Shown: positions 1 through 62,600 of the stretch, in pieces | Layout: each line of letters starts with the position of its first letter | How positions within the stretch are numbered: position 1 is the first letter of the stretch | Source: Penicillus capitatus | Taxonomy: Eukaryota > Plantae > Chlorophyta | DNA: 64,000 nt | Assembly (NCBI GenBank): GCA_965649825.1 | Contig: OZ287701.1 | Coordinates: 547,101 to 611,100 of the forward strand | Direction of reading: 5' to 3' | Translations under genes and position numbers: made by a program | The notes under the pieces: model-generated | The model's database searches: none | What the model was told of the DNA's origin: nothing | Seen by the model: only the letters and a program-made list of their open reading frames with translations

Positions 1-281
1 CTGAGAGCCTTCAACGTTTCCTGTCGACGTACTCCAACTCTTAACAGCGAAGATTTCTTGTTGTCTTCACCAGGAGCTGCAGCCGCAAGGGGGTCTCTTT
101 CTTGGTGTCGAGTGAGTCGCCGAGGTCTTCCCTCGTCTCCTCGTCGAAAGCCTTCGGCATCTAGGTAACCTCTCCGTACAACAAGCGTTAAGCAGTCGGC
201 TTCGGCGTAAGGTCCGTTTATGCTGACAGCCAAGATGGCAGGCATGTAGCGCGTTCTTGCACGGCAAGCATGACGGGACAA
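1..281 (-). CDS. 5' fragment of an ankyrin-repeat gene paralog (continues off the window); start codon uncertain
   Basis: Near-identical mirror of 51065..51345, which is the first exon region of the ankyrin gene at 51065..54229. Confidence 0.55.
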   Translation of the reverse strand, partial: MSRHACRARTRYMPAILAVSINGPYAEADCLTLVVRRGYLDAEGFRRGDEGRPRRLTRHQERDPLAAAAPGEDNKKSSLLRVGVRRQETLKAL

Positions 282-1210
282 CGAAGCATCCGAAGAGGCA
301 GAGATGGCTGTACACGTTTACATAGGTCTTCCACAGTAGAACACAACATAGAAACGCTAGAGTCAAAGCATCCATGAGCCAAAGAAGTCGGTCTCATGCA
401 TCGACGAGGCCTGATATGCTTCAATGCATCCAGCACGCTCATCTAGTGCAGGAACAAAGTAATCAGCATGATGCGACCTTCTCCCTGTTTTGAGCAACGT
501 GCATATGGACTGTGGAGAAAAACGGAGATCGGAATCAAGGTCTAGTCCAGAAGTTTCGTTCGACACATACAGGCGTTCGACTCATCTCTTGTACGAACAA
601 CTGCATAGAATCTCGCTAATCAGAGGAAATAGAAGAAACACGTGCAGAGATCCTTGGACACTGCACATCTTTGCACGTCGTCGACGAGCGGATCGTTGAT
701 CTACCGGCCGTGACTGTTGCGCCTAACCACGTTTGCAAACCTTAGATTGCAAGATGAGCTCGGAGAGATGAGAGTGTCCAGAGAGGCCCAAGGCCGGGGA
801 GAGTGTGTTTTTGTTACTTCAGAGAAGATCGCATAGAACAACAGACGGATTTAAGGCATCGAGCAAAAGCAGCACTTCGTGACTCACTCTGCACGTTTGG
901 CAACTCACAAAGACCGTTCAAGAACGCTGAAGTGACAGTCATTCTGATTCGCGCCACTGCTCTCAGCTGGGAGAGTGCAATGACAGCAGAATATGCACAG
1001 GTTACTTCCACACGAGACGGTTGAGTACAAAGAGCCACGTCAGATTCAATAAGTTCAGTTTCGTCGGACCTGACGCCGAACTGCGGTCCGCCTGCCGCAT
1101 GAAACGACGTCTAGAAAGATAAACGACTGCGACATCGCGCATGTCATCCGTCGCCCGGCAAACTGCAACCCCTTCTTCTATCGCATCTGGCATCTGGATT
1201 GCAGTCGAGG

Positions 1211-1801
1211 ATGAGAGTTTGGCAGTGTGCGTTGCGCGGGGACGGACGGGAATCTTGTCCTGGGTCTGAAGGTGACAGAGTCGAGGCCACGCTCTTCCCA
1301 TGCCTATATGAGACCTACCCGTCGGACAACAATATCATCGGAGGAAGTCTCCAAGTAGACGAACCCGTTGGAGTCACGTTTAATAAGCTTTCCATTGCGT
1401 TTGGCGTCATAGCCCTTGTCGTCTGGGTCGTGGGAATCATTCGTTTGAGACAAGAAATCCGAAATGGAAACAGCCCCCTGATCGCCTTTCTGGTCTACGT
1501 TTTCGTTGTCGCCGTCGGAAGTGTCGTCTGTGGCGTCCTGCTGCAATTGCAACTAAACGATTCCTCGGATGTCGTCTGTCGAGGTTACACTTCTCTGTTC
1601 GGGGAGTACGTGGAGTGTGCTATCGGTTATGTGTGCAATGGCAACAAGTTGGAGAAGGAGAATGACGGTTCGGATGTTGCACTCATGCTGTTCTTTTGTG
1701 CCTCTGCTTTTCTCTCCCCTGTCTTCGGCGCAGTAGCTTTGATGGTCGTCATCGTGACAGACGTCTTGCAATGTGACTGTTTCGTGTTCTTTCCCAACTG
1801 A
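1211..1801 (+). CDS. Small orphan membrane protein with about 3 hydrophobic segments and several Cys (copy A)
   Basis: ~196-codon ORF with hydrophobic stretches (LSIAFGVIALVVWVVGII; LIAFLVYVFVVAVGSVVCGVLL; VALMLFFCASAFLSPVFGAVALMVVIV). The frame is intact in both copies despite 16 amino-acid differences. Confidence 0.6.
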   Translation: MRVWQCALRGDGRESCPGSEGDRVEATLFPCLYETYPSDNNIIGGSLQVDEPVGVTFNKLSIAFGVIALVVWVVGIIRLRQEIRNGNSPLIAFLVYVFVVAVGSVVCGVLLQLQLNDSSDVVCRGYTSLFGEYVECAIGYVCNGNKLEKENDGSDVALMLFFCASAFLSPVFGAVALMVVIVTDVLQCDCFVFFPN

Positions 1802-3022
1802 CGGATCAATTCTGAATGTCGCAGTCGACGTCTACAGATTCTGAGATGTTTGGCAATCGATACGGTTCATTCACACTGGAAAACGAGAATACGTTCAATC
1901 TAATAAAAAATACGTCCGTCGTCTGGTTGTCGTAGTCACAATTCATATCCTTCCAACCTCACCTGTTGCACATTGGTGTCTGTCTGTTAGCATCCATACG
2001 ATTCATTAAGCACGTACGTGGCAATGATGTGAGTATACACTTCAGATGTCAAGAATAGTGGATCTCTGGATTGTTTGTGTTTCCAAACGCCTGTTCTTCC
2101 CTGTAAGCCAACAAACCGTGAATGTGAGCTGTCGTTTCGGAAAAGGAAATCAATCACCAACCTGAGATCAGACAAAAGGAATCGAGACTGAACGCATAAC
2201 AGCCAGAATCGTGGTGCGCGGCATTGTCCGTCATCTGACTGTCTACCGTAAGCGACGTAGGGATCTTAAAGGCAGAGTTTCGATTGACCATAAGAACTTC
2301 ATGTGAATCGACACGACAACTCTGCAGCGCGGCACAGGACTTGAGATCTAGTAATTACGAGAACTGCGTCTGAGTGACTTCACGGCAGGATTATCGCCGG
2401 GTAACTGTCCCTGGACGCGAAGCGTCCTGCGGCTCAGATGTGCGAAGATTCCCTAGCGAAAGAGAGCAGCTTCTTCTGGAATTTTTACATCCAATACGCA
2501 CTTCCAACACGCTGTGCTACACCGACGTCGTGGGCGACATGGTCGAGCGATCAAGAATCACCATGACGACGTCGGCAGCTGCGAAGCCGATGATTCACAT
2601 GCGTAGCTCAATACATGGATGTTGGCGTTAGGTCGCCCCGCTAGACATCTGATCGTGTCGACGCACGTCGAGAGGCGTGGCACGATAGAAGCAGAACGCA
2701 AAGATTCACGGCGCCTGTCTGAGGCGTTGCGTCTGTTATCTTCTAGAGGTCTTGTCTCACCTGTCTTCTCAGTGGCAGTCAACAGTCGATGTGCCACTTA
2801 CGCGACTTCAGCGTTGTTGATTGACGCGTCCAGTCAAAGTACATTCAACTACTACAGCATGAATCCATCATCCGTGAAGCGATTTTGATTTTAGTTCGCC
2901 CCGACGCGCATGAACAGTTTGTTCGTTCGCATTGTTCTACGCAGTTCTCCATATTCTACCGCACAAGCTCTTTTCGTTCGCGCGACAGCAAAGGGAACGG
3001 CGGTGTTTGCCGAAAGGAAGAC

Positions 3023-6000
3023 ATGTCTGAGCGAAGGTGCCGTCTGTCGTCGAAGACGCCGTTGGTGCACATTCTGGTCTTGCTGTTTCTGCTGCGCCGA
3101 GGAGAGGCGTTTTCGCTCTTCCCAGGTGAGGCGTTTCACGGCAGCTTTCTTCTACGCAGTCTGTAGTAACGCCAGCTGCCTGTGCTGTCTGGTTGCGAGG
3201 TTCAATGACTGTTTGATGCTCAGGTGGCCGCTGGAGAGTACGCGCTACGCCTACAGAGGTTCACGTCAAAACGACTAAAGAGGCAAAGACGGCAATCGCG
3301 CAGCTTCGAAGCAAACAGACGATCGTCTTCGACTTGGACACCATGCAACTGACAGAGAAGCTTGTCATCAAAGGCGTATCTGACGTCACCATCCGCGGAG
3401 TCCGCCCATCGACGACGCTCCTTTGTCCTGCCAAAGAGAGCATCTTCTTCATCAGGCACTCCATCGCAGACGCTGCCTGCCGCTATACGGAGTCGGTTTC
3501 TTTGCACGCAGAAACTGTCGAAACCTTCGAATCGAATCTCTGGTATTCAGAGGGTGCAAGAATGCTAGCGCCATCGAAGTCTTGGGATCCCGATGGCCTT
3601 TCGCCGTCGGACCAAGAGAGCGCAGATATGCGACGGCGTTTTCGAACGATTTTGACGAGGACTGGCAGTCGGCAGGTACGAATAGCGACTGAATGCATCA
3701 TCAATCCTCGTGGCGATCATGAATAGGGTGCTCGGTGACTCTGGAACGCTGCGAATTTAGAGACAACTCCAAAAAGGGATCGACTGTTCCATCTGCTAAC
3801 CTTCCACACGAGAACCCTTCACCGCAAGATCTGGGCGGGAGTGCGTTATCAGTTTATCGCTGTGCGCTGAACCTGAGCGAGACGCAGTTCACAAACAACA
3901 GTGCCGACATTGGAGGTGCTGTGGATGTGCGGAACGCTCCTGTGAGGGCCAAGCGATGCGAGTTTCGCAACAACAAGGCGATGCTGATTGCGGGGGCCAT
4001 TTTCTGTGACAAAATTGATGCAAGCTTTCAGCACTGCCGGTTTGAGGGAAACAGTGGCGAAGACGGAGGGGCAGTTCTTGTGTTTTCAGGAAATGTGACC
4101 TTTAGTCGATGCAGCATCACAAAAAACAACGCCACCAACGAAGGCGGCGGCGTTATTGCTTTCGGCGATGCTACCTTTTATGATTGCGACATCTCAAATA
4201 ACACCGCCCTCCGCCGCGGCGGACTCTTCGTGGAAGGCGTCGCCAAGTTCAGTCGCTGCAGTTTTAAGCACAACAGCGCTGGATTTCAAGGAGGTGCTCT
4301 TGACGTAAGAAAAATGGCGACATTGAATAACTGTACGTTCACAAACAACGTAGCTGGTCGCAGTGGAGGAGCCATCATGTCGGTTGCCTGCAGTTTGACG
4401 TGCAATGAGCTCATCATGCGTCACAACCGGGCAGAAGAAGGCGGTGCCATTTTGACTGTTGACGGCGTTGTCAACTTCACTGACTGCAGATTCGAAGAAA
4501 ATTTAGCCAAAATAGGCGGCGGAGCAGGAGCATTTCGACGAACGAATGTGACGGTAAAAGTCACTACTGTTTTTAAATCAAACTATGCTCGTATTGGTGG
4601 TGCATTGGAACTGCAAGAAGGAAGCTACTTTAAAATTGCAGGAGGGTCCATACACTCCCAGAGCATTACAAGGTTCATATCCAACATGGCTTACATGACA
4701 GGAGGTGCAATTGCTTGCATCCAATGCGGTACGTTGCTTTTCTACACTTACTTCGCTAGGCGTGTGTTTGTTGCATGATAGGCAGTATCGATTTTCAAAA
4801 TTACAGCCAGGCACACTTCAGTGAGAATCTGGCAACAAATGCTGGCGGTGCAATGCTCTTCGAGGGAGGGACTCTGTTTTCGGACCAGCATTCAGATCTC
4901 CTCTTTGCGAGAAACATCGCTTCGATTGGAGGAGCGATATGCCTCAGAAACGCCGGAGGGATCAAGAACGAATGCCAAGCATCGCCCTGTTTCACCTATG
5001 CGAACAACACAGCTGTGCTCGGCGGTGCTGTCTACATCAGTTCCGAGCACGAACTATCTCAATCCATTGAGGTAAATAGCACTCAGCAGTGTTCCTCCTG
5101 ACTCCTTTTTGCTTTCAGATTCGAGGGTGGCATTTGACAGATAACCGAGCACTCGGTCTGGAATGGCTGGGAGCTGATGGCGACTCTCTCGTTCGAACGT
5201 GGCTTCACGTGAGGAAGCTGACTGATCAGTACCTCTCACATATCGAGGATCGCCATCAAGGCGAAGGAGGTGGCTTCTACCTTTCTCTCAATAACACCAG
5301 GGGTGGATCGAGTGTCAATGTGGTGCTGGAAGAAATCTTGATCTTAAGGAATAAGGCCTTCACTGGAGGTGAGTTTTTCCGTGTGCGAAATACAGACTGA
5401 GAGACTGACTTCACTAGGTGGTATGTATCTCGAAGGCAGCTACGAAAACGGGGTACGCTTTTGCAAAGCTCCTTGTCCTCGTACCGTCTTCCCAAATCAG
5501 CGCTACCGTCGTGTAATGTTTAGTAATGTAAATGTAACCCAAAACACTGCCGAAAACAGTGGAAGCGGTTTGTATGTGGGTTCAATATCGAACTTCACAT
5601 ATGTTTGTCATGATAATGATACTGGGACAGATGACGTCTTAGAAGGACATGTTTTTGGAAATCGAACATGCCTTACTGTGACGGACAACCGCATGCTCGT
5701 GAGTTTGTTCCCCATCTCCATGATCACACTTTCTCTGTTATCATTTAGACTGACAGGAATAGCAGATTTAATGACATCGGGACGGATGCTGTGTCTTTGA
5801 AGATAGAAAACGTCGATGGACCTTTGTCATTATCTCCTGGAGATCTTCTGGGCATCTCTTCCAAGGTTAACGAGAACTCAGAATGTTTACCCAGAGACAT
5901 CAGGATCTCCGTGAGAGACATCTTTGGCGAAACCATCGAATGGCCAAACAAAGATAGCGGTGAGATCATGCTGCAGCTTCTTCGAGGTTCATGCGTGACC

Positions 6001-8459
6001 CGTAGATCTTACTGTGGTGCTCGAATCTCAACATATCAGCGGAACAACTGAATACACTGCTAAGAACGGGATTGTGAGCATCGACAACACAAACGTGGTC
6101 GGAGCAGACATTAATGATACGATAGTGATTCGTTCGAAGGACGGAAGGGATCTGTCGACGTCGCTGCTCTTCGGCACGACACACTGTCAACACGGAGAGC
6201 TCATGGATGAAGACAAAGCCACCTGCTCTCGATGCAAGTACTCGTACTACAGTTTTTCGACGATAGACGAATGCCGAGAGTGTGAGGAGCATGGGATATG
6301 CGTTGGAACCATGGCATTAGTGCCAGAGGAAGAGTACTGGCACTCGACGCCCTTCTCGCCTCGAATGATCAAGTGTCCCATCGACAGAGCATGCAAAAGA
6401 AAGAACAGAACAAGGGATCTGGTCGAGTACTATGAAGATACGACGCGCGTCTCAGAAGAACTACGAACATGGAACCAACGCGACAGAGAGCCGGAAGACT
6501 TTACAGAAGACTATCGCCAGTGTTCAGATGCATACAACGGGACACTGTGCGCCTCATGCGCCGAAGATCACGGACGATCAGTAAGCGGCCAATGCGAGCC
6601 TTGCGGCGGCAGCCGTTTGGTATCTGTTGTCATGACCCTAGCTTCAGCAGTTTTGTTCTTTTTTGCTTTTTCTTTCAAGTTGTGGCTGGCCTGGAGAAGC
6701 ATGCACACAGATCTTGCCATCCAAGCTTCGCAGAGACTGAGGATTGCCCTCGGATTGGATAAGCCATCCTTGTCTTCGAGAAGCTCATCGGACGCTGAAG
6801 ACAGTTCGTCGGAGCCACTCATCCAGTACCGTACAGACCATCCAGATCCAGTCAAAGACGCCCAATCGCTTGATGAGAAGGCGACCGGACCTTCCACCTC
6901 CGAACAGCGAGCTATAGAGATCAGACGCTTGTCGCGATCCGACCCAACGACAGATCAGCACAGATGTCGCGTGTGCACGGATGGTTCTAACTGTCCTGAC
7001 TTCAGCGGAGCAGTGGGATCCGTCTTGACGATCTATGGAGTAAGAAAATCTACCGTCGATGGGCATTGCTGATGTCATTTTGTTCTCGTAGATACTGTTC
7101 GACTACATGCAACTGTGCAGTTTGGCCTTTTCTCTTGGCGTCAAGTGGGAAACGGGCATGAAAGCGATGCTCCGCGTTCAAGGTAGCCAGACTATTCATC
7201 TGTGGCCCAGGTTCACCATTCGACGATGAATCGTAGGCGCAGCGGCGAGGATGAGCAACATTATCCGCTTGCACCCATTCGAGTGCAACTTCTCAAATGA
7301 ATACCGTCATGAGCACGAGAAAGGCTTGACACTGATGATTCTGTTGATTCGAACTCTCTTCCCTTTCGTCATACTTCTCTTCTATGTCCTCGTGTTTGCA
7401 TTGTGGAGGCTCAGTCTCAAACGACGAGGAGATCGATCAACCGAAGACGGTGTGACTCCACATGTCCAGTTTATTTTCTTTTTTGGGTTTTTCACTTACG
7501 TTATCGACATCGCTGGTGAACTGTTCCGCGTTGTCAGTTTTGCCAAGCTGCCAGAGAAGCTCTCCGATCACGAGTTCAATCGCTACGATCTCCTGAACGA
7601 CAGTTTCATCTGGTCAGAAGACTCGTCCATCAAATACATGGAGGGCCCTCATTTGTGGGTATCTGTGCTTTCTCTGACTTTGTTGTTTTGTTGCCTCGTT
7701 GTTCTCGGCTACTCGGCATCCATCATATACCGTGGTAAACAGCAAGACCTGTTGGAGGATGTCGATTTCGTGCACAAGTACGGATTCCTGTACTCTGGAC
7801 TCCGTTCCACAGGACTGGCTCTGTACTGGAACATTTTCGTGGCAATGAGAACGATAACGCTGTCGTTCGTCATCATTGTTTTCTCGCCGATCAATGTGAC
7901 CACGAACATCAGACTGGGTTTGGTGTTCATTGTGATTTTTATATCTTACTCAATGCATGTCTTCGTTCAGCCGATTGACAGCGAAGACATTCACAAGACG
8001 CTGCCTTCCTGCATGGGCAGCACTCTCAGATGGCTGGGTGCTGATCAACTGGCGTCGTCGTGGATATGGTTCAACAACAGAATCGGTTACAACTCGATGG
8101 AGGCAACATCGCTGCTGATGGCTCTCTTCGTCTATGCCATTGCGACATCCATCACCGACGAAGAAGCATCCATGCTCTCCATCAACGCGCTTTCCACCAT
8201 CTGCGCCACTCTGAATTTCATTTTCATGGGCTTCTTGTTTTGTCGCCTGTGGTTAGGCGTCCACAGAATACTGGACGTGCATGCAAAACACTTGAGGATA
8301 TGGTTTCAAGGAATCCACGATCTGGAGGAAGATGAAGACACCTGGCTGGTTCACAAGCTCTGGGTCATCTGGCAATCGGGCCGGGCGGATAGGGACACCA
8401 GTGGATTCTGGAAGCTGCGTTCTGAACTCGCTTCTCTCAATGACCCCTTAAAAACATAA
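3023..8459 (+). CDS. Large receptor-like protein (copy A): signal peptide, Pmp-like right-handed beta-helix repeats, Cys-rich region, multi-pass TM C-terminus; about 10 exons
   Basis: ATG 3023 followed by a hydrophobic leader (PLVHILVLLFLLRRG). Repeated GGA(I/L/V) and FxxN motifs at 3735-5070. Cys-rich CQHGELM..CSRC..C..C..C..GYNGTLCASC at 6180-6610. Several TM helices at 6620-8270. The exons can be joined in frame through GT/GC-AG introns (e.g. 3126-3223, 3456-3510, 3676-3726), ending at TAA 8457-8459. Confidence 0.85.
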
Positions 8460-9417
8460 GTCTCTTTTTGAACTCAGTTCCCTGCCAGTAATGAAAGGAG
8501 AACTTGGAACATCTCTAATAATTGCACTGATGAACGTCAGTGCTGCTGCAGTCTATAAACTCAACCATTCTTTCAGCCGTCTTCTGATGAAGGATGACGG
8601 TTTGCTTTTTCAGTTTACGTCTGTATAAATCTTACTCGTTAATTGTCTTTGCCTTCTGTTATCAGCAGCATGGGTGCGCATCTAGACTATCGCAGCCATG
8701 TTTAATGGTATGTCATTGGAATTTGAATGTCGATAAGATCCTTCAATCCACATGTTCAGTGCTCACATGTTATGTAGAGTTTCCGATCCCGTGAAACGCA
8801 TAGATGTGGCATTGCGTGTAATCAAAGTGTTTATTGAGCATGAAATGATTTCAGCTCATCGTTCCAGCTTGTTTGACATCCCCAGCACAAAGCATTTTCG
8901 GGTCGCAACCTCGTTTCGTTCCTAGATCAAAGATCAAAAACTGTCCAGTGAGAGACAACACATGAGATCATCGACGCGCAGATTCAACGGATAGACTGAA
9001 AGGAATCTGTGAGAAGCTTCATGCACGATGTGACAGCTATGCAATGGCCAATCCCATCCCGATGTTAATGTGACACTCGGCATGCGCGTTTCCACAACGG
9101 GGCGCGGCAAAAGAGAATACAGACGTGTGAGTTCAGAATGCGGCACAATGCCTGATTCGTAGCGCGCCACACTCTAACAGGCGAACACATGAGGCAGACG
9201 TCAGGAGAGCTATCGATTTTATGTACGCACTGACGTGACAGATGGATGATCTTTGTTTGCGTCGTTTCGCGAGTGTCATCAGCTGTCTTGTCACAGCAAC
9301 TTTCAATTGCGGACCACAAAACGATGGCCTCATTTAGTGTCGGCGCATCCTTGACAACTCTCTGTTTGTCTGTCCGTTTCTTGAACGGCACCTCTTTCAC
9401 GAACCTGCTTTGTTATC

Positions 9418-10036
9418 ATGACACTTTTCTCCGTTTCCTGGGCGGCCCGTATTCTCTGCCTAATTTCCTGCATCTCAGTTGCCGCGGCTATTGAAGTTAC
9501 CGTTTGCAAAGATGCGCCAACCTTCGAGCTGCCCGAAGTGAAGGTGGTACCCGACCCACCAGCGTTTGGCAAAGATGTGACAGTCTCCGTCACGTTTAAC
9601 CCAGGTCCGCCGACAGCCGCCATGAGCAGACGTTCAATTTCTCTGTAGATGGCGTCAGGGAGTCAGGCGCTACTTTCGAGTGGGAGGTTTTCTTCATCAT
9701 GTTCGACTTCTTTTCAACGGAGTACCAAAGAAGAGACGCATCTACTCGCAAGCTGTGCGACTACACGAAATGCCCTATTACAGGCGATAAAGTCACGATC
9801 AATTACAAAACGTTGATACCAGACGTCGGAGACGTCGGAGGTCTGGCGGGATTTCTCGGACAGGTAATACATAAGACACTTTACAGCGCACTGCATTCCG
9901 TTTGTGGCAGTTCATTGACGTCCTGCTTCGCGTGAAAGTGAAGAGTAACGAAGACAATCTTGTCGCGTGTTTCGAAATCAAAACTAAGATCAAAGACACG
10001 TCTGGATACGATCACACACACTGGGTCTCTGTGTAG
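9418..10036 (+). CDS. Secreted ML-domain (MD-2-related lipid-recognition / NPC2-like) protein, 3 exons (copy A)
   Basis: Signal peptide MTLFSVSWAARILCLISCISVAAA, then VCKD..VKVVPDPPAFGKDVTVSV, LCDYTKCPI and ACFEI, matching the ML-family Cys spacing. Two ~50-nt GT-AG introns give a continuous frame to TAG 10034-10036. Confidence 0.85.
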
Positions 10037-11263
10037 AGGATCCGTCCGATCCAGGAGGACGCTCGATTCAGAGATCTGCCGATCGAACCGTATACAGCAG
10101 CTTTGCATTTGTATGGCATCTATCTCTGTCCTGATTGGTTGGATCATTTCAGGCAGTCCGTTTTGTTGGGCGAGGGAATCGATTTCTGAATGGATTTTTG
10201 GTTTCTTCTCCGAGTGTTTTGCACTCTTCAACGTAGTATGTTCTCTCATAATGGATTGGTGTTGGACAGTAAGACATGAACACTTTATGAGTTGTTGCCG
10301 TCTGCTCACCATTGTTCAAAATGGTGTCTGGACAGTTTTTTTGTTTTGTCTATCAGCGCCTGTTGAAAGTGGACAACTTTTAAGAGGAATGATTGGTTTA
10401 CTTGCGTTGTGAGCGATTCGCTTCTTCTCGGTCACACCTATCACACTCTCGGATCCAATCGATTGATTCTCCGATCGCCTAAAAGAGTGTCGGATTCGTA
10501 TTGATTCACTGCTTGACTGGGTTTAGATCATCTGCGACTCCATGCACAATGTCGGATTTGAGTGAACGCTAAAGACTGTGCGGTGTGTTCCCTGAAATAC
10601 CGCTTTTCTGTGATAAACACATTCTGCAGAGACGAAGCTATGAACAGATCGATGAGATTCGCACTTCAATGAGATAGATCTTGGTAAGCAGGACGAGTGC
10701 TTCACGGAGTTTGTTCGGAAGGCAAGATCAAAAGAAACATCTAGCTTTGATGTCAACCAGGTTAAGGATACAGAAGCTTCTCAGCATGACATTTCATGGT
10801 TACTACATAAGCCTTGTGTAATCTGCCATCGTCTGGATTTCCTTCCAGTGAATGTTTCTGCCTCCGTTAACTCTCGATAAAGCGCTAAGTGAGAAGAAGA
10901 GCTTGTCAAGGTTCTCTCTCAATAGAGCACGATGTATGAACATCAATGACATTGCCCGTGGCTCACTGACATTTCCACTGTTCACGTTGCGTTTGACAAC
11001 TGGACAACCAAAGAGATACCAGTCACACGATGGTCATTTCTCCACTATTCCAGTCCATTGTTTAGATCTCACGAAAAACACACGACTCACGAATACTTCA
11101 TCGACGACCGTTTCAGCATACTAACATTGTGCGTAAGTGAGACGACCCTTTTGTTGTATCATAGAGAGTCCCTTCATTTACATAGTGCTCGAAATCGTCA
11201 TTCGTTCATGTGAGAAAACTCCGAACAGAAGTTCAATCCAGCAGCTAAACGGCCGGTACCTTT

Positions 11264-39820: not shown

Positions 39821-40764
39821 GAGCTGTTGTAAGAGCAACGGTGATTCTTTTTTTCAAGTCGTGCTTGAACGATTATTGATTGTTGTAATTGGTCATATGT
39901 TTTGCCACGATCGGCATTCTTGCTCGGCAGCTTTGCGTGTTTCTTCGTTGCAGTGCGCCACTCGATACACATACAATGCATCGTAAAATATTCACAAGGC
40001 TTATGTAGAAACCATGAAGTGTCATGCTATGAAGTTCTCTATCCCTAACTTGTTCGAGGGCAAGCGCGATGTCTCGTTTGATCTTGCCTTTAGAACTCCG
40101 TGAATCAGCAGTCCTGCTTATTAAGATCTCGTTGAAGTGCGAATCTCGTCGATCTGTTCATCCCTTCGTCTCTGCAGAATGCATTTATCGCAGCAAAGCG
40201 TTACGTCACGGAACACACCGCACAGTCTTTAGCGTTCACTCAAATCCAACATTGTGTGTGGAGTCGCAGATGATCTAAACCCAGTCAAGCAGTGAATCAA
40301 CACGAATCTGACACTCTTTTAGGCGATCGGAGAATCAATCGGCTGGATCCGAGAGTGTGACAAGTGTGACCGAGAAGAAGCGAATCGTTCACAACGCAAG
40401 TAAACCAATCATTCCTCTTAAAAGTTGTCCACTTTCAACAGGAGCTGATAGACAAAACAAAAAAACTGTCCAGACACCATTTTGAACAATGGTGAGCAGA
40501 CGGCAACAACTCATAAAGTGTTCATGTCTTACTGTCCAACACCAATCCATTATGAGAGAACATACTACGTTGAAGAGTGCAAAACACTCGGAGAAGAAAC
40601 CAAAAATCCATTCAGAAATCGATTCCCTCGCCCAACAAAACGGACTGCCTGAAATGATCCAACCAATCAGGACAGAGATAGATGCCATACAAATGCAAAG
40701 TTGCTGTATACGGTTCGATCGGCAGATCTCTGAATCGAGCGTCCTCCTGGATCGGACGGATCCT

Positions 40765-41383
40765 CTACACAGAGACCCAGTGTGTGTGATCGTATCCAGA
40801 CGTGTCTTTGATCTTAGTTTGGATTTCGAAACACGCGACGAGATCGTCTTCGTTACTCTTCACTTTCACGCGAAGCAGGACGTCAATGAACTGCCACAAA
40901 CGGAATGCAGTGCGCTGTACAGTTTCTTATGTCTTACCTGTCCGAAAAATTGCGCCAGATCTCCGACGTCTCCGGCGTCTGGTATCAACGTTTTGTAATT
41001 GATCGTGACTTTATCGCCTGTAATAGGGCATTTCGTGTAGTCGCACAGCTTGCGAGTAGATGCGTCTCTTCTTTCGTATTTCATTGAACGGAAGTCGAAC
41101 AAGATGAAGAAAACCTCCCACTCGAAAGTAGCGCCTGACTCCCTGACGCCATCTACAGAGAAATTGAACGTCTGCTCATGGCGGCTGTCGGCGGACCTGG
41201 GTTAAACGTGACGGAGACTGTCACATCTTTGCCAAACGCTGGTGGGTCGGGTACCACCTTCACTTCGGGCAGCTCGAAGGTTGGCGCATCGTCGCAAACG
41301 TTAACTTTAATAGCCGCGGCAACTGAGATGCAGGAAATTAGGCAGAGAATACGGGCCGCCCAGGAAACGGAGAAAAGTGTCAT
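40765..41383 (-). CDS. Secreted ML-domain protein (copy B)
   Basis: Mirror of 9418..10036 with the same intron positions and an intact frame. Confidence 0.85.
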
Positions 41384-42353: not shown

Positions 42354-45300
42354 TTATGTTTTTAAGGGGTCATTGAGAGAAGCGAGTTCAGAACGCAGCT
42401 TCCAGAATCCAGTGGTGTCCCTATCCGCCCGGCCCGATTGCCAGATGACCCAGAGCTTGTGAACCAGCCAGGTGTCTTCATCTTCCTCCAGATCGTGGAT
42501 TCCTTGAAACCATATCCTCAAGTGTTTTGCATGCACGTCCAGTATTCTGTGGACGCCTAACCACAGGCGACAAAACAAGAAGCCCATGAAAATGAAATTC
42601 AGAGTGGCGCAGATGGTGGAAAGCGCGTTGATGGAGAGCATGGATGCTTCTACGTCGGTGATGGATGTCGCAATGGCATAGACGAAGAGAGCCATCAGCA
42701 GCGATGTTGCCTCCATCGAGTTGTAACTGATTCTGTTGTTGAACCATATCCACGACGACGCCAGTTGATCAGCACCCAGCCATCTGAGAGTGCTGCCCAT
42801 GCAGGAAGGCAGCGTCTTGTGAATGTCTTCGCTGTCAATCGGCTGAACGAAGACATGCATTAAGTAAGATATAAAAATCACAATGAACACCAAACCCAGT
42901 CTGATGTTCGTCGTCACATTGATCGGCGAGAAAACAATGATGACGAACGACAGCGTTATTGTTCTCATTGCCACGAAAATGTTCCAGTACAGAGCCAGTC
43001 CTGTGGAACGGAGTCCAGAGTACAGGAATCCGTACTTGTGCACGAAATCGACATCCTCCAACAGGTCTTGCTGTTTACCACGGTATATGATGGATGCCGA
43101 GTAGCCGAGAACAACGAGGCAACAAAACAACAAAGTCAGAGAAAGCACAGATACCCACAAATGAGGCCCCTCCATGTATTTGATGGACGAGTCTTCTGAC
43201 CAGATGAAACTGTCGTTCAGGAGATCGTAGTGATTGAACTCGTGATCGGAGGGCTTCTCTGGCAGCTTGGCAAAGCTGACAACGCGGAACAGTTCACCAG
43301 CGATGTCGATAACGTAAGTGAAAAACCCAAAAAAGAAAATGAACTGGACATGTGGAGTCACCCCGTCTTCAGTTGATCGATCTCCTCGTCGTTTGAGACT
43401 GAGCCTCCACAATGCAAACACGAGGACATAGAAGAGAAGTATGACCGAAGGGAAGAGCGTCCGAATCAACAGAATCATCAGCGTCAAGCCTTTCTCGTGC
43501 TCATGACGGTATTCATTTGAGAAGTTGCATTCGAAGGGGTGCAAGCGGATAATGTTGCTCATCCTCGCCGCTGCGCCTACGATTCATCGTCGAATGGTGA
43601 GACTGGGCCACAGATGAATAGTCTGGCTACCTTGAACGCGGAGCATCGCTTTCATGCCCGTTTCCCACTTGACGCCAAGAGAAAAGGCCAAACTGCACAG
43701 TTGCATGTAGTCGAACAGTATCTGCGAGAACAATGCACATCAGCATTGCTTCTCAACGAGAGCTTTCTTTACTCCATAGATCGTCAAGACAGAGCCCACT
43801 GCGCCGCTGAAGTCAGGACAGTTAGAACCATCCGTGCACACGCGACATCTGTGCTGATCTGTCGTTGGGTCGGATCGCGACAAGCGTCTGATCTCTATAG
43901 CTCGCTGTTCGGAGGTGGAAGGTCCGGTCGCCTTCTCATCAAGCGATTGAGCGTCTTTGACTGGATCTGGATGGTCTGTGCGGTACTGGATGAGTGGCTC
44001 CGACGAACTGTCTTCAGCGTCCGATGAGCTTCTCGAAGACAAGGATGGCTTATCCAATCCGAGGGCAATCCTCAGTCTCTGCGAAGCCTGGATGGCAAGA
44101 TCTGTGTGCATGCTTCTCCAGGCCAACCACAACTTGAAAGAAAAAGCAAAAAAGAACAAAACTGCAGAAGCTAGGGTCTTAAGAACAGATACCAATCTGT
44201 TGCCGTCGCAAGGCTCGCATTGGCCGCTTACTGATCGCCCGTGTTCATCGGCGCATGAGGCGCACAGTGTCCCGTTGTATGCACCTGAACACTGTATATA
44301 GTCTTCTGTAAAGTCTTCCGGCTCTCTGTGGCTTTGGTTCCATGTTCTCAGTTCTTCTGAGACGCGCGTCGTGTCTTCATAGTACTCGACCAGATCCCTT
44401 GTTCTGTTCTCTCTTTTGCATGCTCCATCGATGGGACACTTGATCATCCGAGGCGAGAAGGGCGTCGAGTGCCAGTACTCTTCCTCTGGCACTAATGCCA
44501 TGGTTCCAACACATATCCCATGATCCTCACACTCTCGGCAGTCGTCTATCGTCGAGAAAGTGTAGTACGAGTAGTTGCATCTAGAGCAGGTCGCCTTGTC
44601 TTCATCCATGAGCTCTCCGTGTTGACAGTGTGTCGTGCCGAAGAGCAGAGATGTCGACAGATTCCTTCCGTCCTTCGAACGAATCCATAACGTATCACTA
44701 ATGTCTGCTCCGACCACGCTTGTGTTGTCGATGCACACAATCCCGTTCTTAGCGGCGTACTCGATCGTTCCGCTGATGTGTCGAGATTCGAGCAACACAG
44801 CAAGATCTACGAGTCACACGTGAATTGTGAATCGCACTGCAGCATGATCTCACCGCTATCTTTTTTTGGCCATTCGATAATTTCGCCATAGATGTCTCTC
44901 ACAGAGATCCTGATCTTACTGGCTGATAATTCTGAGCTCTCTTCAACCTTGGAAGGGACGCCCACAAGATCTCCGGGAGATAGCGACAAAGGTCCATCGA
45001 CGTTTTCTATCTCCAAAGACACAGCATCCGTCCCGACGTCATTCTGTCTGCTATTCTTGCCAATCTAAATGACAACAGAAAAAGTGTGATCATCAAGGTG
45101 GGAAATGAACTCACGAAGATGTGATTGTTCGTCACAGTAAGGCATCTTCGATTTTCTGTTATATGTCCTCGGATGACGTCATTCCCCGTTTCATCATGGC
45201 AAACATATGTGAAGCTTGATATTGAACCCACATACATTCCGCCTCCACTGTGTTTGGCGGTGTTTTGGATCACATTCACGTCAGTGAACATTACGTAACG

Positions 45301-48300
45301 GCAGCCGTCATTCGGAGGCACTGTAGAAGGACAAGGAGTATTGTTGAAGTGCACCCGGTCTTCATAGCTGGCTTCAAGGTACATGCCACCTAGTAACCTT
45401 TCTCAGTTTGCCTTCCACACAGAGAAAAAATCTACCTCCAGTGACGGCCTTACTCATTGATATCTTGATCTCTTCCAGCACCACATTCACACTCGATCCA
45501 CCCCTGGTGTTATTAAGTGCAAGGTAGAAGCCACCTCCTTCGCCTTGGCGACGATCCTCAACATGTGGCAGGTACTGGTCACTCTGTTTCCTCGCGTCGA
45601 GCCATGATTGAACGACGGAATCGCCATCGGTTTTCAGCCTTTTTAGACTGAGTGCTCGGTTGCCTGTCAACTTCCATTTTTTTATCTAAAGGCCAGAAAA
45701 AGTCAGGAGGGACACAATGGAGTGCTTCTTACATTAATGAATTGAGACAGTTCGTGTTCAGAACTGCTGTAGACAGCACCACCTAGCAGAGCTGTGTTGT
45801 TCTCATACGTGTAACAGGGAAACACTCCACAAAGATTATTGACTTCTCCGACGTTTCTGAAACATATCGCTCCTCCAATCGAAGCGATATTCTGCTTGAA
45901 GAAGATATTTGACTCCCAGTCCGAGGACAGACTCCCTCCCTCGAAGGACATGGCACCGCCAGCGTTCGTTGCCAGATTCTCAGTGAAGTGCACCCAGCAG
46001 TAAGTTTGGATATCGATGCTGCCTATTACGCAGCAAACACATGCTGCGCGATGCAATGTAGAAATGCGACGTACCGCATTGGATGCAAGCAACTGCGCCG
46101 CCGGTCATGAGAGCAGTGTTGGATGTGAACCGTATGGTGTTCAGGGAGTGTACGGATCCCTTTTCAATCTCAAAGCGGGTTCCCCTTTGAAGTCCAAGTG
46201 CACCGCCCACGAGTGCACGATTCGATGTGTAATTGGCCATCCTGACTGTCACGCTTGTTCTTCGAAATGCACATGCACCGCCGACGTCTGCCGCATGGTT
46301 CTCCTCGAACATGGAGTCAGCAATGTTCACATCGCCGCCAACAGTCGAAATGGCACCGCCTTCTTCTGCTCGGTTGCGACGCATGATGAGCTCATTGCAC
46401 GTCAAACTGTCGGCGATCGACATGATGGCTCCTCCACTGCCACCAGCTGTGTTGTTTGTGAAGGTACAGTTATCCAGTGTCGCCCAATCTTCGACGTAAA
46501 GAGCACCTCCATCCCCTCCAGCATGGTTGTTTTCAAAGATGCACTTTTCAAATGAGCCTTTGGTTAGCAAGATCGCGCCAGCTATCCCTTCGGCCGTGTT
46601 GTTTATCACACTGCAATTGACAAAATACGCTTCGTAGACATCGAGTACACCTGCTTTTAGAGCAATGTTGTTCAGAAAGCTGCAATTGGTGAAATGCGCT
46701 ATCCCTATATCCACGGTGCAAATCCCAGTGCCGTTGACCACGTTGCTATCCAGCTTGCAGTCCGTGAAATTTGCGTCTCCTTTGACAAAAACTGCCCCTA
46801 CATCACGATCGGCGGAGTTCCCAGAGAAACGACAGGTTTTGAAAATCACGTCGCCGAACACTGCGATCGTTCGATCAAGTCCAGCACTGTTGTTCGTGAA
46901 GTCGCAGTTTACGAAGCGCGCGCTTCCCTTAACATAGACAGGTGAATTTGCCACGGCAACGTTGTCCTCAACGATGCAATTGACCAACGTCACATCACCA
47001 TCGACGGAGATCGCAGTGTTGTCCCATCCCGACCAGTTGTTCGTTATGTTGCAGTCTTCAAGGCTGGCACTGCCTTCAACGGAAACCGCGGCATTGCTTC
47101 TCCAAGCTGTATTGTGCTTCAAACTGCAGCGACTGAACTTGGCGGCGCCTGTCACGGTAAGCGCGCTGTTGCGTCTGGCGGTGTTATTCGAGATTTCGCA
47201 ATCATGAAAGGCAGCATCGCCGACGACGTAAACGCCGCCGCCGTTGTTGGTGGCATTGGTGTTCGTGATGCTGCATTGACTGAAGGCCACGGTTCCTGCA
47301 ATCACGACAACTGCCCCTCCGTCAACGCCACTGTTTCCCTCAAACCGGCAGTGCTGAAAGCTAGGATCATTGTTCACACATAAAATGGCCCCTGCAAACT
47401 TCATCGCCTTGTTGTTGCGAAACTCGCATCTCTCGGCCTTCACAGGGGCGTTCCGCACGTCCACAGCACCTCCAATGTCGGCACTGTTGTTTGCAAACCG
47501 CGTCTCGTTCAAGATCAATGCGCAGTCATGAACTGATAGCGCGCTCCCTCCCAGCCCTTGTGGTAGCGGGTTCTCGAATGGAAGGATTCCTGGTGGAACA
47601 GTTAATCCCTTCTTGGAGTTGTCTCTGAAAACGCAGCGTTCCATGGCTATCGAGCACCCTAGTCAACATCGCCATGAGGACTGGTGATGCTTCCAGTCGC
47701 TGTTCGTACCTGTCGACTGCCAGTCCTCGTCGGAATCGTCCAAAAGCGCTGTCCTCGATCTGCGCTCTGATCCCAAGACTTCGATGGCGCTGAAAGCACC
47801 GTTGCACCCTCTGAATACCAGAGATTCGATGCGAAGGTTTCGACAGTTTCTGCGTACAAGAAACCGACTGTCCGTATGGCGGCAGGCAGCGTCTGAGATG
47901 GAGCACCTGATGGAGAAGATGCTCCCTTTTGCAGGACAGAGGAGCGTCGTCGACGGACGGACTCCGCGGATGGTGACGTCAGATACGCCTTTGATGACAA
48001 GCAGCTCCGTCAGTTGCATGGTGTCCACGTCGAAGACGATCGTCTGGTTGCTCTGAAGCTGCGCGACTGCCGTCTGCGCCTCGACGGCCGTTTTGACGCG
48101 GACCTCTGTCGACGTGGCATGCACGCCACAGCCACCTAAGCATCAAATGGTCGTTGAGCGGCGAAACCAGACAGCACAGGCAGCTGGCATTGCTGCAGAC
48201 TTCGTGCAAGAAAGTTGCCACGAAACACCTCACCTCGGTTCAGTAGAAGCAACAAAATCAGAATGTGCACCAAGAGCGTCCTCGGCGGCAGTTGGTACCT

Positions 48301-57987: not shown

Positions 57988-59871
57988 GTCCGAGCCAAGT
58001 CAGCGTTTACGCAGTTACGAAAGTAACAATCCCTCTACCGAGGACTCATGTTTCGACGCGGCATTCGACAGATGTGGGATCCTGTCAGCGTCGCGAGGAC
58101 GTTTCCCTCGCTCCCGCCTCGTCATCGCCGCCACGGGGAGACGTCGTCAGGCATCTTCTTCAGAGGACACGGCCGTGAGCGGGCTCCCCGAATCAGATCG
58201 CATGTGCAGAGGAGCATGACAAGCGGGGACCATCCGTCGTTCCACTCGCGTGGATCCTCTTTCAGTCAGGCAGAACGGTCTCGCTCCCAGGCTCTCGGAG
58301 GCGACTGTGCAGAGGTGCTCACGTCTTCTCCCTGCTACAGCTTTCAGCCCTCTGCTCATGGAGTCTCCGAGGAAATCTGCGAGGTGGAGGTCGAGGCGCA
58401 TGGCCTCGTGCAGATCTTTCGGACGGGAAAGAAGTTCGCAGCGAGGAATCTGGAGCGAGTGGGACCGTTCTCCCGGAATCTTGACGGTCCCGCTCTACTG
58501 CAAGGGCTTCTGCGATCCGGGAGAGGCGACGAGAGACCTGGCCCGCCTGCCGCCGGGGGGCCGCACGTCATCGCGTTCACGTTCTGTCCGATCCGGCTCG
58601 CGGCGCGGAGAGACTCGTCTTCGTGGGCGATCTTGGTCTCAGAGGCGGCGGAGACAGAGACCCTCCGTCCGGCAGCGATTCGCCGGGACGCCGGGCTGCC
58701 TCCCGGTTTCGGCGGAGGAGGGACCATCGTCTGGTCGAGCCTTACATCGTTCGCTACTTTGTCGGGAGGAAGGACCAACTCAGCGAGATGATTGAAGCGT
58801 TCGAGTCGAGCGACGAGTCGCTTGTCGTCAGGGCGATCGTCGGCCCGGGCGGCATCGGGAAGACTCAGCTCGCGACACGGCTGTTCGACCTTTTCAGGGG
58901 AAAGCGCCACTACGACGGCGCGTTCTGGATACCTTCAAGCTCCAGAGAGACCCTCACTGCCACGTTCCTGCAAATCGCAGAGTATCTGAGAGTTCGCACC
59001 GACACCGAAACCCCGGAGCTCATCAAACGTGTTCGAGAAGAGCTCGGACGATCTCACTGTTTCTACGTCTTCGACGACGCTCTGAGTTTCGAACTGATAC
59101 GCGAGTACTTTCCTGCGACAAGCGGACATGTCATCGTAACGACGAGGGAGGCTGGAGGCGGAGACTGGGAGAACAACATGCTTCGACTGGGACCGTTCGA
59201 CGAAGACGAAGCTCGGATTCTGGCAGAGAGACTCGAATGCGGCAGGTCAATGCGGCCGAACGATCTAGACGACTTGATGGACCTGTTGTCTCGGATCCCG
59301 CTGGTCCTCGCTCAATTCTTCTCCGTGATGCGGGACGAAGAGAGGTCGAGCCCCGCCGAATGGGTGCAGCGTCTGCTGCGGTACGAAGTCACGGGACGAG
59401 AGGCCAAAGCGATAGAAGAGCTCTCAGCGACGCGAATCGGCGAAGAAGCGAGCGGAATGGTCTTCGTGTTCAACTGGAGCGTGCAGAGGATTTCGGAGGA
59501 ACCCAACGACCTCGGCCCCCGTTCGCTCGACATTCTCGCCAAGCTAGCGCTGCTCGATCCGAACGGTGTGCCCGTCGAGTGGATACACAAGTGGCACGAA
59601 TGTGGTGATGGACAGTCCGGGGAAAGAACGCAGAATGCCATAAGGATCCTTGAGCGCTTCTCTCACGTCGCGTGGGACACAAAGACGAATCAAATCTACA
59701 TCCACGCCGAGAGGCAACTTTTAGCGAGACACCTTCTCCTAAAGAGCGACGACAGTGTTTCCAGTCACGTTCGAGAATCCGAAGAACAGCACAAGAACGA
59801 GATCGGAGACCACGTGAAGACCATAGTGGATTCAATCGGACGATACATTGACGGGTGGAGAACGGACCGTT

Positions 59872-60172
59872 GTCGTGTTAAGGCGTAATGCTCACAATAA
59901 TGCGCTCATCTACCTACACTTGTATCAATCTCCAAGTGACAGGTCGTAGGTTCTCTATAGCTTCCCATCCAAAAATAGACCCGCGGCTATACGTCGCAGA
60001 TTCCAAGTAGATTCCGGAATCTGCGCAGAATATTCCTTTTTGTGACTTAATAAAGTACCCTATAAAAGCGTTGTAGATGTACTGATCTCGTCTTTCGTTT
60101 ATCAGACTTTACGTTTCAAAGGTTTACGTGCGCCCACCATTCAAATTGTCTCCATCTAAAACTCTACGCGAC
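59872..60172. mobile_element. 301-bp AT-rich insertion with a 6-bp target-site duplication (ACCGTT); MITE-like non-autonomous element
   Basis: ACCGTT at 59866-59871 and 60173-60178. Short imperfect terminal inverted repeat GTCGTGT...ACGCGAC. Removing the insert and one TSD copy restores the frame (WRTDR-SNQELWSSLARNG). Confidence 0.75.
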
Positions 60173-60339
60173 ACCGTTCGAACCAAGAACTTTGGTCCTC
60201 GCTCGCAAGAAACGGGTCGGCACTCCTGAAACACTGCGCGAGCTCGGAGGACACTGGCGTGGAAATAAAGTTACTCCAACACACAACACGGTCGTACAGA
60301 GAGATATGCATGTTTCAAGAATCGCTCACCAATGCTCAA

Positions 60340-62600
60340 AAAGCACTCGAGACGTGCGAGCGCCTTCACGGCGACGCAGATCATCCGGACACCGTCCAGT
60401 GCATCAAGAGCTAGGCCTTCGGACTCGACCGAACGGGGAGAATCAACGAAGCCGTGCCGCTCTACAAGAGGGCCCTCGACATGTGCGATCCCCTTCACGG
60501 CGACGCGGACCATCCGGACACCGTCGATTGCATCAAGATCTACGCCATCGGACTCGACCGAACAGGGAGAATCAACGAAGCCGTGCCGCCCCTTCACGGC
60601 GATGCGGACCATCCGGACACCGTCCAGTGCACCAAGAGCTACGCCATCGGACCGAACAAACGGGGAGAATCAACGAAGCCGTGTCGCTCTACAAGAGGGC
60701 CCTCGACATGTGCGAGCGCCTTCACGGCGACGCGGACCATCCGGACACCGTCCAGTGCATCAAGAGCTACGCCATCGGACTCGACCGAACGGGGAGAATC
60801 AACGAAGCCCTGTCGCTCAGAAAGAGGGCCCTCGACATGTGCGAGCGCCTTCACGGCGACGCGGACCATCCGGACACCGTCCAGTGCATCAAGAGCTACG
60901 CCATCGGACTCGACCGAACGGGGAGAATCAACGAAGCCGTGCCGCTATACAAGAGGGCCCTCGACATGTGCGAGCGCCTTCACGGCGACGCGGACCATCC
61001 GGACACCGTCCAGTGCATCAAGAGCTACGCCATCGGACTCGACCGAACGGGAAGAATCAACGAAGCCGTGCCGCTCTGCAAGATGGCCCTCGACATGTGC
61101 GAGCGTCTTCACGGCGACGCGGACCATCCGGACACCGTCCAGTGCATCAAGAGCTACGCCATCGGACTCGACCGAACGGGGAGAGACAACGAAGCCGTGC
61201 CGCTCTACAAGAGGGCCCTCGACATGTGCGAGCGCCTTTACGGCGACGCGGACCATCCGGACACCGTCCAGTGCATCAAGATCTACGCCATCGGACTCGA
61301 CCGAACGGGGAGAATCAACGAAGCCGTGCCACTCTTTAAGAGGGCCCTCGACATGTGCGAGCGCCTTCACACCGACGCGGACCATCCGGACACCGTCGAT
61401 TGCATCAAGAGCTACGCCGTCGGACTCGAACGAACGGGGAGAGACAACGAATCCCTGCCGTTTAGAAAGAGGGCCCTCGACATGTGCGAGCGTCTTCACG
61501 GCGACGCGGACCATCCGGACACCGTCGATAGCATCAAGATCTACGTCATCGGACTCGACCGAACGGGGAGAATCAACGAAGCCGTGCCGCTATACAAGAG
61601 GGCCCTCGACATGTGCGAGCGCCTTCACGGCGACGCGGACCATCCGGACACCGTCGAGTGCTTCAAGAGCTACGCCATCGGACTCGAACGAACGGGGAGA
61701 GACAACGAATCCCTGCCGTTTAGAAAGAGGGCCCTCGACATGTGCGAGCGTCTTCACGGCGACGCGGACCATCCGGACACCGTCGATTGCATCAAGATCT
61801 ACGCCATCGGACTCGACCGAACGGGGAGAATCAACGAAGCCGTGCCGCTATACAAGAGGGCCCTCGACATGTGCGAGCGCCTTCACGGCGACGCGGACCA
61901 TCCGGACACCGTCGAGTGCTTCAAGAGCTACGCCATCGGACTCGAACGAACGGGGAGAGACAACGAATCCCTGCCGTTTAGAAAGAGGGCCCTCGACATG
62001 TGCGAGCGTCTTCACGGCGACGCGGACCATCCGGACACCGTCGATTGCATCAAGATCTACGCCATCGGACTCGACCGAACGGGGAGAATCAACGAGGCCG
62101 TGCTGCTCGACAAGAGGGCCCTCGACATGTGCAAGCGCCTTCACGGCGACGCGGACCATCCGGACACCGTCGAGTGCTTCAAGAGCTACGCCATCGGACT
62201 CGAACGAACGGGGAGAATCAACCAAGCCTTGCCGCTCTACAGGAGGGCCCTCGACATGTGCGAGCGTCTTCACGGCGACGCGGACCATCCGGACACCGTT
62301 GAGTGCATCAAGAGCTACGCCGCCGGACTCGACCGAACGGGGAGAATCAACGAAGCCTTGCCGCTCTACAGGAGGGCCCTCGACATGTGCGAGCGTCTTC
62401 ACGGCGACGCGGACCATCCGGACACCGTTGAGTGCATCAAGAGCTACGCCGCCGGACTCGACCGAACGGGGAGAATCAACGAAGCCTTGCCGCTCTACAG
62501 GAGGGCCCTCGACATGTGCGAGCGCCTTCACGGCGACGCGGACCATCCGGACACCGTCGAGTGCATGCGCACTTATGCTGCTTGTTTGTCAAGAATCGGA
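60340..62600 (+). repeat. Coding tandem repeat, 129-nt unit (43-aa TPR): 15 intact units plus ~2.7 degenerate 5' units
   Basis: ttcacggcga recurs at 60721 and 60850 (period 129). Unit RINEAVPLYKRALDMCERLHGDADHPDTVQCIKSYAIGLDRTG. Confidence 0.97.

Follow-up and report, generated by a model that had tools for sequence, protein, structure and literature searches.

Two copies of one gene lie in the window (by which we mean the whole stretch of 64,000 nucleotides analysed here), and almost everything that separates their coding sequences changes an amino acid. The question raised by this locus is [quoted passage not shown] The copies, A and B, align over 619 nt with 22 mismatches and no gaps; 19 of the mismatches are coding and three fall in the first 18 nt of intron 2, while intron 1 has none. 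Fourteen codons are replaced and a single one, L151 (ctt/ctc), is purely silent. All of these changes had been listed by the first-pass annotation, and all are present when the codons are compared under our splice model; the intron differences were absent from that annotation.

The differences are gathered in four patches, whose replacements are given in Table 1. The clustering in short patches and the two-hit codons, which had also been pointed out before, stand up to a formal treatment: of the 21 intervals that separate neighbouring differences, 14 measure at most 10 nt, a count that none of 20,000 permutations reaches, clustering is seen at the residue level as well (p=0.002), and in each of four codons two bases have changed (AAA/GAC, TTT/CGT, GAG/AAA and GGA/CAA). 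The remaining 146 codons, with their 103 silent sites, and intron 1 contain no A/B difference at all. The net charges of the two proteins are nearly equal (-6 and -7), and charges are redistributed between A and B.

Table 1. Positions of the features discussed in the text, in window coordinates unless another record is named.
Feature	Position	Strand	Details
Arm A	1-10822, with at least 2,750 nt more left of the window	+	Self-BLAST; L001 match
Arm B	54115-39990	-	Self-BLAST (51345-39990) and L001 1-2900, which matches 54115-51196 at 95.7%
Homogenised block	7590-10430 (2,841 nt)	.	~1% from arm B ~43223-40371; sliding divergence
ML-domain gene, copy A	9418-10036	+	Exons 9418-9604, 9649-9863, 9911-10036; splice model, translation
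Introns of copy A	9605-9648 (44 nt), 9864-9910 (47 nt)	+	GT..AG
ML-domain gene, copy B	41383-40765	-	Exons 41383-41197, 41152-40938, 40890-40765
Patch 1	9493-9510	+	B 41308-41291; E26K, T28N, K31D; first beta-strand, beside Cys30
Patch 2	9699-9726	+	B 41102-41075; 7 differences in 28 nt; M80L, F84R, T86M, E87K, Q89E; strand 4-strand 5 hairpin
Patch 3	9826-9881	+	B 40975-40920; 8 differences in 56 nt: five coding (V122A, G127D, G130Q, L132F) and three in intron 2 (9868, 9877, 9881); strand 6-strand 7 loop
Patch 4	9956-9980	+	B 40845-40821; N150D, silent L151, K158Q; private to B
ML homolog of the related species, near ChlH	L007 19453-18936 (ERZ26696514)	-	Syntenic

Both copies have three exons and a spliced product of 175 aa. 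The two products exceed the gathering threshold of the ML profile PF02221 (36.4 and 38.6 bits, cut-off 22.7; E-values 8e-9 and 2e-9) and cover positions 2-133 of its 133, in agreement with their earlier description as ML-domain paralogs. The intron positions and phases are the same in the homolog of a related species, which supports the gene model. Four cysteines (C30, C99, C104 and C154) are invariant in an alignment with distant homologs, and the N-terminus is hydrophobic, ends in AAA and, judged by eye, resembles a signal peptide. The AF2 model is an immunoglobulin-like, eight-stranded beta-sandwich of moderate confidence (pLDDT 68.5, pTM 0.63). Its best PDB matches by Foldseek are yeast NPC2 (6R4M/6R4N), followed by the GM2 activator, human NPC2 and MD-2/MD-1 (E down to 1e-7, TM 0.47-0.57); a profile search also matches yeast Npc2 (E 1e-13). 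At most of the NPC2 tunnel-lining positions the alignment places hydrophobic residues of the ML protein. Taken together, profile and model predict that A and B are secreted, NPC2-like lipid-binding proteins of the ML family. What they share with NPC2 and with yeast Npc2, the latter annotated as a phosphatidylglycerol/phosphatidylinositol transfer protein, is the ML domain, the predicted beta-sandwich, the cysteines, the PDPP..G and CPI motifs, and the signal-peptide-like N-terminus.

Other readings of the gene structure were tried and rejected. A splice donor at the GGT of codon 127 would shift part of patch 3 into the intron; it breaks the frame and would cost the fold a core strand, the site is lost in B (GAT), and the modelled intron positions are kept in the related species. 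Two open reading frames that overlap the gene copies, 9960-10412 (+) and 40489-40998 (+), have no Pfam match reaching the curated cut-off, the second having only a weak match to Med1 (15.6 bits, cut-off 25). They are treated as artefacts and attributed to a prokaryote-style gene caller. The introns of this region are very short, 44-51 nt (both introns of copy A, one at ~7042-7092, and those of the related species), which is unusual for a green alga.

We turn to the ratio of replacement to silent change, which the first-pass annotation had read as positive selection. By the Nei-Gojobori method there are 17 nonsynonymous and two synonymous differences, with dN 0.043, dS 0.017 and an omega of 2.6 (Fisher p=0.15). 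The pairwise codon likelihood gives an omega of 3.5, with a likelihood ratio of 3.78 against omega=1 (p=0.052), and it rejects omega=0.3 (p=2e-5). For three ORF pairs next to it in the duplication, omega lies at 0.17-0.33, and their N:S of 60:58 differs from the 17:2 of the ML pair (p=0.002). Strong purifying selection on the ML pair is rejected. On the deep branch, which separates A from B and from an allelic copy B' introduced below, nonsynonymous sites change at 14/404 and silent plus intron sites at 4/212 (p=0.32); inside the divergent tracts that make up this branch the corresponding figures are 14/59 and 4/34 (p=0.18). None of these four within-gene tests is significant for omega >1. An MK-like contrast of fixed differences between A and (B,B'), 14:1, with those between B and B', 4:1, gives p=0.45 at very low power.

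An omega above one is thus borderline at best, and the proposal of positive selection survives in part: the excess of replacements is real and patchy, and its two main patches align with loops at the mouth of the lipid tunnel (as mapped below), but the dN/dS ratio is not clearly above one. For codeml-type tests no usable orthologue was found; an exhaustive representative search with the ML protein returned only fragments from the window itself and distant ML relatives of at most 42% identity. The ratio is moreover misleading, because dS has been lowered by gene conversion between the inverted arms in which A and B lie. The low dS of the ML pair is a gene-conversion artefact, and the ratio is no measure of an adaptive burst.

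The case for conversion starts from the surroundings of the two genes. The arms of the inverted duplication are at least 13.5 kb each and are separated by ~29 kb of unique spacer, which includes the nuclear ChlH. Their divergence falls into strata, ~21% at 4290-6000 and 10.6% on the A versus (B,B') branch at 10431-10822, with indels several hundred bp long. Between these strata lies the homogenised block of Table 1, in which, outside the gene, A and B differ at 21 positions in 2,222 nt. A young block inside older duplicated sequence points to gene conversion and not to a recent duplication. Over 7000-7600, furthermore, B' switches between A-like and B-like segments. The arms, in short, exchange sequence by repeated short-tract gene conversion.

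Such mosaicism is not confined to the ML gene. In arm B, 16 private differences are packed into 46 nt (~43768-43723, equivalent to 7044-7089 of arm A), all of them inside a GT..AG intron of ~51 nt in which A, B' and two further arm copies, C and C', are identical. This patch is either an old remnant of the B type or a tract from an unseen copy; a micro-inversion was considered as its source and does not explain it. Since short-tract mosaicism occurs at neutral sites too, patchiness alone is no evidence of selection. A second dense patch, seven differences in 14 nt, is private to B' and sits in the flank 3' of the ML gene, beside a small indel (window 10347-10360). Two ORFs of the arms have no Pfam match, one of 402 aa (7251-8459 + and 42354-43562 -) and one of 352 aa (6014-7072 + and 43740-44798 -); comparison of the arms shows purifying selection on both (omega 0.17 and 0.33, respectively), and the 402-aa ORF has five copies in the assembly ERZ25074695. 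In the spacer, ChlH is split, with an interruption between 37327 and 37376; its best named relatives are the chlorophytes Bryopsis sp. (82%) and Tetradesmus (81%), and the window is nuclear DNA from a green alga.

The three-way comparison rests on this same long-read metagenome assembly (ERZ25074695), in which the contig of the window is ctg340429_39x_l (723,813 bp). The contig ctg340446_32x_l (L004) supplies the third member of the exon-1 ORF cluster at 90% identity, namely B'. Over 17 kb it follows arm B and the spacer collinearly, with 98.6% identity, and it ends inside the spacer at window position 31343. From this collinearity and identity we regard B' as an allelic haplotype, or a very close strain, of B. 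An allelic partner of arm A was sought in the 90% clusters of the exon-1, 402-aa and 289-aa ORFs, and none was found, as these contain A, B, B', C and C' only.

Could the two arms themselves be haplotypes or strains that were misjoined in inverted orientation, so that the comparison of A with B is really an allelic one? A metagenome assembly of long reads in which a separate allelic contig exists does leave room for the thought. A fold-back, however, would yield a near-perfect palindrome without a spacer, whereas here 29 kb of unique genes separate the arms, the arms differ by anything between 1% and 21% and by indels several hundred bp in length, and B' runs along both arm B and the spacer with a uniform 1% of differences. 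We consider a misjoin extremely improbable.

With B' in hand, the differences can be assigned to the branches of an unpolarised three-way comparison of A, B and B'. In the 2,222 nt of block that flank the gene, the counts are 9 for A, 12 for B and 24 for B', so that paralog A is no further from B than is B's own allele, and the sites form either a star or ((A,B),B'). For the gene itself the counts become 18, 4 and 1 (chi-square against the flanks, p=8e-6), and 18 of the 22 differences instead group B and B' against A. Deep-branch differences are 7.4 times as dense in the gene as in the flanks (p=6e-7). These 18 deep differences occupy three tracts, 9500-9510, 9699-9726 and 9826-9881, which total 95 nt and whose divergence, 19%, is that of the old strata of the arms. 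All three lie inside the ML gene, two being wholly coding and the third crossing from exon 2 into intron 2; at the flank rate, three intron changes within 18 nt have p=0.0009. The chance of all three falling in 619 nt of a 2,841-nt block is ~0.22 cubed, or ~0.01 if they are independent. Of the ~16 silent sites within the tracts, one differs. The replacement E26K and all of patch 4 are private to B, with B' in the A state at both, and this is what additional haplotype-specific conversion would produce.

These patterns bear directly on the proposal of a recent burst, in which, after full homogenisation of the gene or a recent duplication, one copy would have fixed ~14 adaptive replacements while neutral sites gained ~0.4-1%. 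Much of what suggested it is real: nonsynonymous sites on the deep branch exceed the flanks by an odds ratio of 8.8 (14/404 versus 9/2222, p=7e-7), several replacements alter charge, several codons are hit twice, and the replacements have a tunnel-mouth position. Yet selection on amino acids does not predict that neutral sites in the gene should also be raised (4/212 versus 9/2222, p=0.02), nor that the cluster of intron-2 changes should adjoin patch 3. The tracts are as diverged as the old strata, and they are common to B and B' although the distance from A to B in the flanks is no greater than that from B to B'; and since the block that contains them is surrounded by duplicated sequence of greater age, it is not a recent duplication. 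A recent burst is improbable, in view of the changes in the intron and of the old level of divergence in particular.

If the tracts are older than the sequence around them, they might instead have been copied, into A or into the ancestor of B and B', from a more divergent ML paralog that we do not see. Conversion is active here and further copies of the arm do exist. Copy C (L005, record 531383-552591) is a part of the arm, equivalent to window 1348-8463, that lies ~70 kb upstream on the same contig; C' is its allele, on the 37-kb contig ctg332023_28x_l (L006). Over 1348-8463, C is nearer to A (93-97%) than to B (85%). As third ML paralogs, C and C' were examined and dismissed: they match the arm no further than window 8463, shortly past the 402-aa ORF, and contain no ML gene. 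No other ML match occurs within the window, the exon-1 ORF cluster at 90% identity consists of A, B and B' only, and an exact look-up places both exon-1 ORFs only on their source contig. A word-indexed search with the spliced ML protein gave no match, missing even the short ORF fragments of the window itself, and is therefore uninformative on paralogs, and a representative library at 50% hides paralogs of 50-90% identity, which leaves some cover for such a donor. On the other hand, a much older donor would have brought more silent differences than the one that the tracts contain. Conversion from a third, older paralog had been offered as an alternative by the first-pass annotation; the searches of the cluster, the window and C/C' lend it no support, and we think it very improbable.

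The related species offers another view of the gene. Its ML homolog (Table 1), probably a pseudogene, lacks the signal peptide and the first strand, is interrupted by an in-frame TGA immediately ahead of the conserved LCDY motif, and borders on a PMP-repeat ORF that is read in a different frame. The ML protein is ~37% identical to that of the window, compared with 97% for ChlH and 88% for the spacer DNA, and the segment of patch 2 has no identity. A value of ~37% beside a ChlH of 97% implies that the family is weakly constrained, or diversifying, in general. As an outgroup to polarise the changes, this homolog was rejected because it is too diverged and probably a pseudogene. The A-arm orthologue was sought in the related species through the neighbouring nucleoporin-like gene, which is on another contig with no ML gene nearby. 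The 402-aa and 352-aa ORFs of the arms are absent at the related locus.

The next question is "where on the protein do the surviving differences fall?" To place them, protein A and human NPC2 were aligned to the family profile by hmmalign, a mapping made at ~20% identity and with a model pLDDT of 68.5. The changed residues of patch 2 (80, 84, 86, 87 and 89) correspond to NPC2 59, 63, 65, 66 and 68, within the segment 59-68. In patch 3, residues 122 and 127 correspond to NPC2 97 and 104, in the 96-104 loop, and residues 130 and 132 are inside a 10-residue, lineage-specific insert of the equivalent loop. The residues V59, V64, F66, Y100, P101 and I103 make up the sterol-tunnel entrance of bovine NPC2 (PMC10855982). 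Among the NPC2 tunnel-lining positions that hmmalign can map, none differs between A and B. As aligned, the two copies appear to share a cavity and to differ at the mouth of the lipid tunnel.

The tunnel mouth of NPC2 is also the docking face for NPC1. The most likely functional difference, as judged from this mapping, is that A and B would bind the same lipid class but differ in gating, in the preference for a ligand head group or in the docking partner. The earlier suggestion that ligand or partner specificity is involved gains from the fact that the two main patches align with the tunnel-mouth loops of NPC2; the positive selection to which it was tied is not established. The protein differs from NPC2 in several respects: identity to the closest solved structure is ~20%, the loop equivalent to 96-104 carries the insert, and in place of the aromatic entrance residues F66 and Y100 there are E/K87 and an unaligned loop rich in Gly and Asp. 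With such residues at these positions, the protein is unlikely to treat its ligand in just the way that NPC2 treats cholesterol. Arthropod NPC2 families (PMC10855982) and vertebrate MD-2/MD-1 also comprise duplicated ML proteins whose copies differ in residues around the cavity. Those families change the residues that line the tunnel, whereas the aligned lining of the algal pair is identical and only the mouth loops differ.

Combining the mosaic with the loop mapping, we arrive at concerted evolution of an old inverted pair, in which the divergent tracts are most likely kept by selection against homogenising conversion; we give this reading about an even chance of being correct. A and B lie in the two arms of a segmental duplication, old and inverted, in the nuclear genome of a chlorophyte. 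Short-tract conversion has homogenised the 2.8-kb block to ~1%, wiping out nearly all silent and intron differences, while the three tracts common to B and B', and a fourth found in B alone, escaped and kept the old divergence of ~19%. The two largest of the surviving tracts align with the two loops of the tunnel mouth, and the aligned lining is identical. Most likely they persist because conversions that erase the difference are selected against, as in a divergence peak under concerted evolution. Dense mismatches may resist conversion mechanically, through the anti-recombination activity of mismatch repair, and by hindering heteroduplex formation those of the tracts may also help them to persist. 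If selection does hold the tracts, the case would single out the two mouth loops as determinants of specificity in this uncharacterised ML protein of an alga.

The pattern matches a known signature and implies no new kind of system. A divergence-peak model was reportedly described by Teshima and Innan in 2008, with red/green opsin exon 5 as its case. In such systems near-identical paralogs under conversion carry short divergent islands, centred on amino-acid differences and set in flanks of low divergence, and paralogs on one chromosome, such as A and B, are as close as alleles. Both elements are present here: interlocus conversion is evident in the stratum mosaic and the discordant site patterns of gene and flank, and the peak is sharp, with 18 deep differences in 95 nt as against nine in 2,222 nt of flank. 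The algal pair is unlike the known examples in that its arms are inverted with a 29-kb spacer, and not tandem, and in that neutral patches of similar size lie nearby. Those examples include exon 5 of the human red and green opsins (reviewed in PMC3924837) and the GOT1 paralogs of Tigriopus (PMC3728101).

The reading by selection has points against it. The N:S ratio between the alleles B and B' is also 4:1, and B' carries neither patch 4 nor K26, which means that losing them to conversion is tolerated at the least. The ML protein may simply be weakly constrained. This leads to a serious rival, a neutral mosaic in which the surviving tracts are chance or conversion-refractory remnants in unconstrained loops with an omega of ~1. 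In its favour, the comparison within the tracts (p=0.18) and the MK-like test (p=0.45) are both null; the intron patch of 16 differences in 46 nt and the seven-site patch private to B' in the 3' flank are comparably dense; and patch 2 falls in a segment that has no identity to the related species, whose copy looks pseudogenic. Several results sit less well with it. The confinement of all three deep tracts to 619 of 2,841 nt has a chance of only ~0.01, and the codon likelihood leans the other way (omega 3.5, p=0.052). In A, B and B' alike the ORFs, the splice sites and the four cysteines are intact and identical, as is the aligned tunnel lining, and the two main tracts are both loops of the tunnel mouth rather than arbitrary loops. 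We judge the neutral mosaic possible but rather unlikely.

The locus is a clear illustration of the way in which conversion between duplicated genes can imitate a dN/dS above one. Conversion erases the silent differences everywhere except in short retained tracts, and the allelic contig makes the resulting mosaic directly visible.

A broader reading would take the region as a fast-diversifying recognition locus, with the secreted ML proteins, beta-helix PMP-repeat proteins and an NB-ARC-TPR gene set in conversion-active duplicated DNA. Conversion together with diversifying selection on the mouth loops would then maintain variant lipid or partner specificities, in loose analogy to MD-2-type lipid sensing or to the conversion-driven diversity of immune loci; we find this quite improbable. 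Chlamydia-PMP-type repeats with a right-handed beta-helix (PF02415, PF13229) are encoded by the ORFs 3735-4778 (+) and 45980-47644 (-), which belong to the most diverged stratum of the arms (~20%), where arm B is ~600 nt longer; here they occur in an algal nuclear genome. An NLR-like gene of this green alga at 58048-62700 (+) encodes an NB-ARC/NACHT-like ATPase followed by a long TPR_12 array, the units of which are 129-nt tandem repeats ~90-94% identical to each other. A paralog of this NLR-like gene, 90-95% similar, adjoins the arm copy C' (L006 15854-19679).
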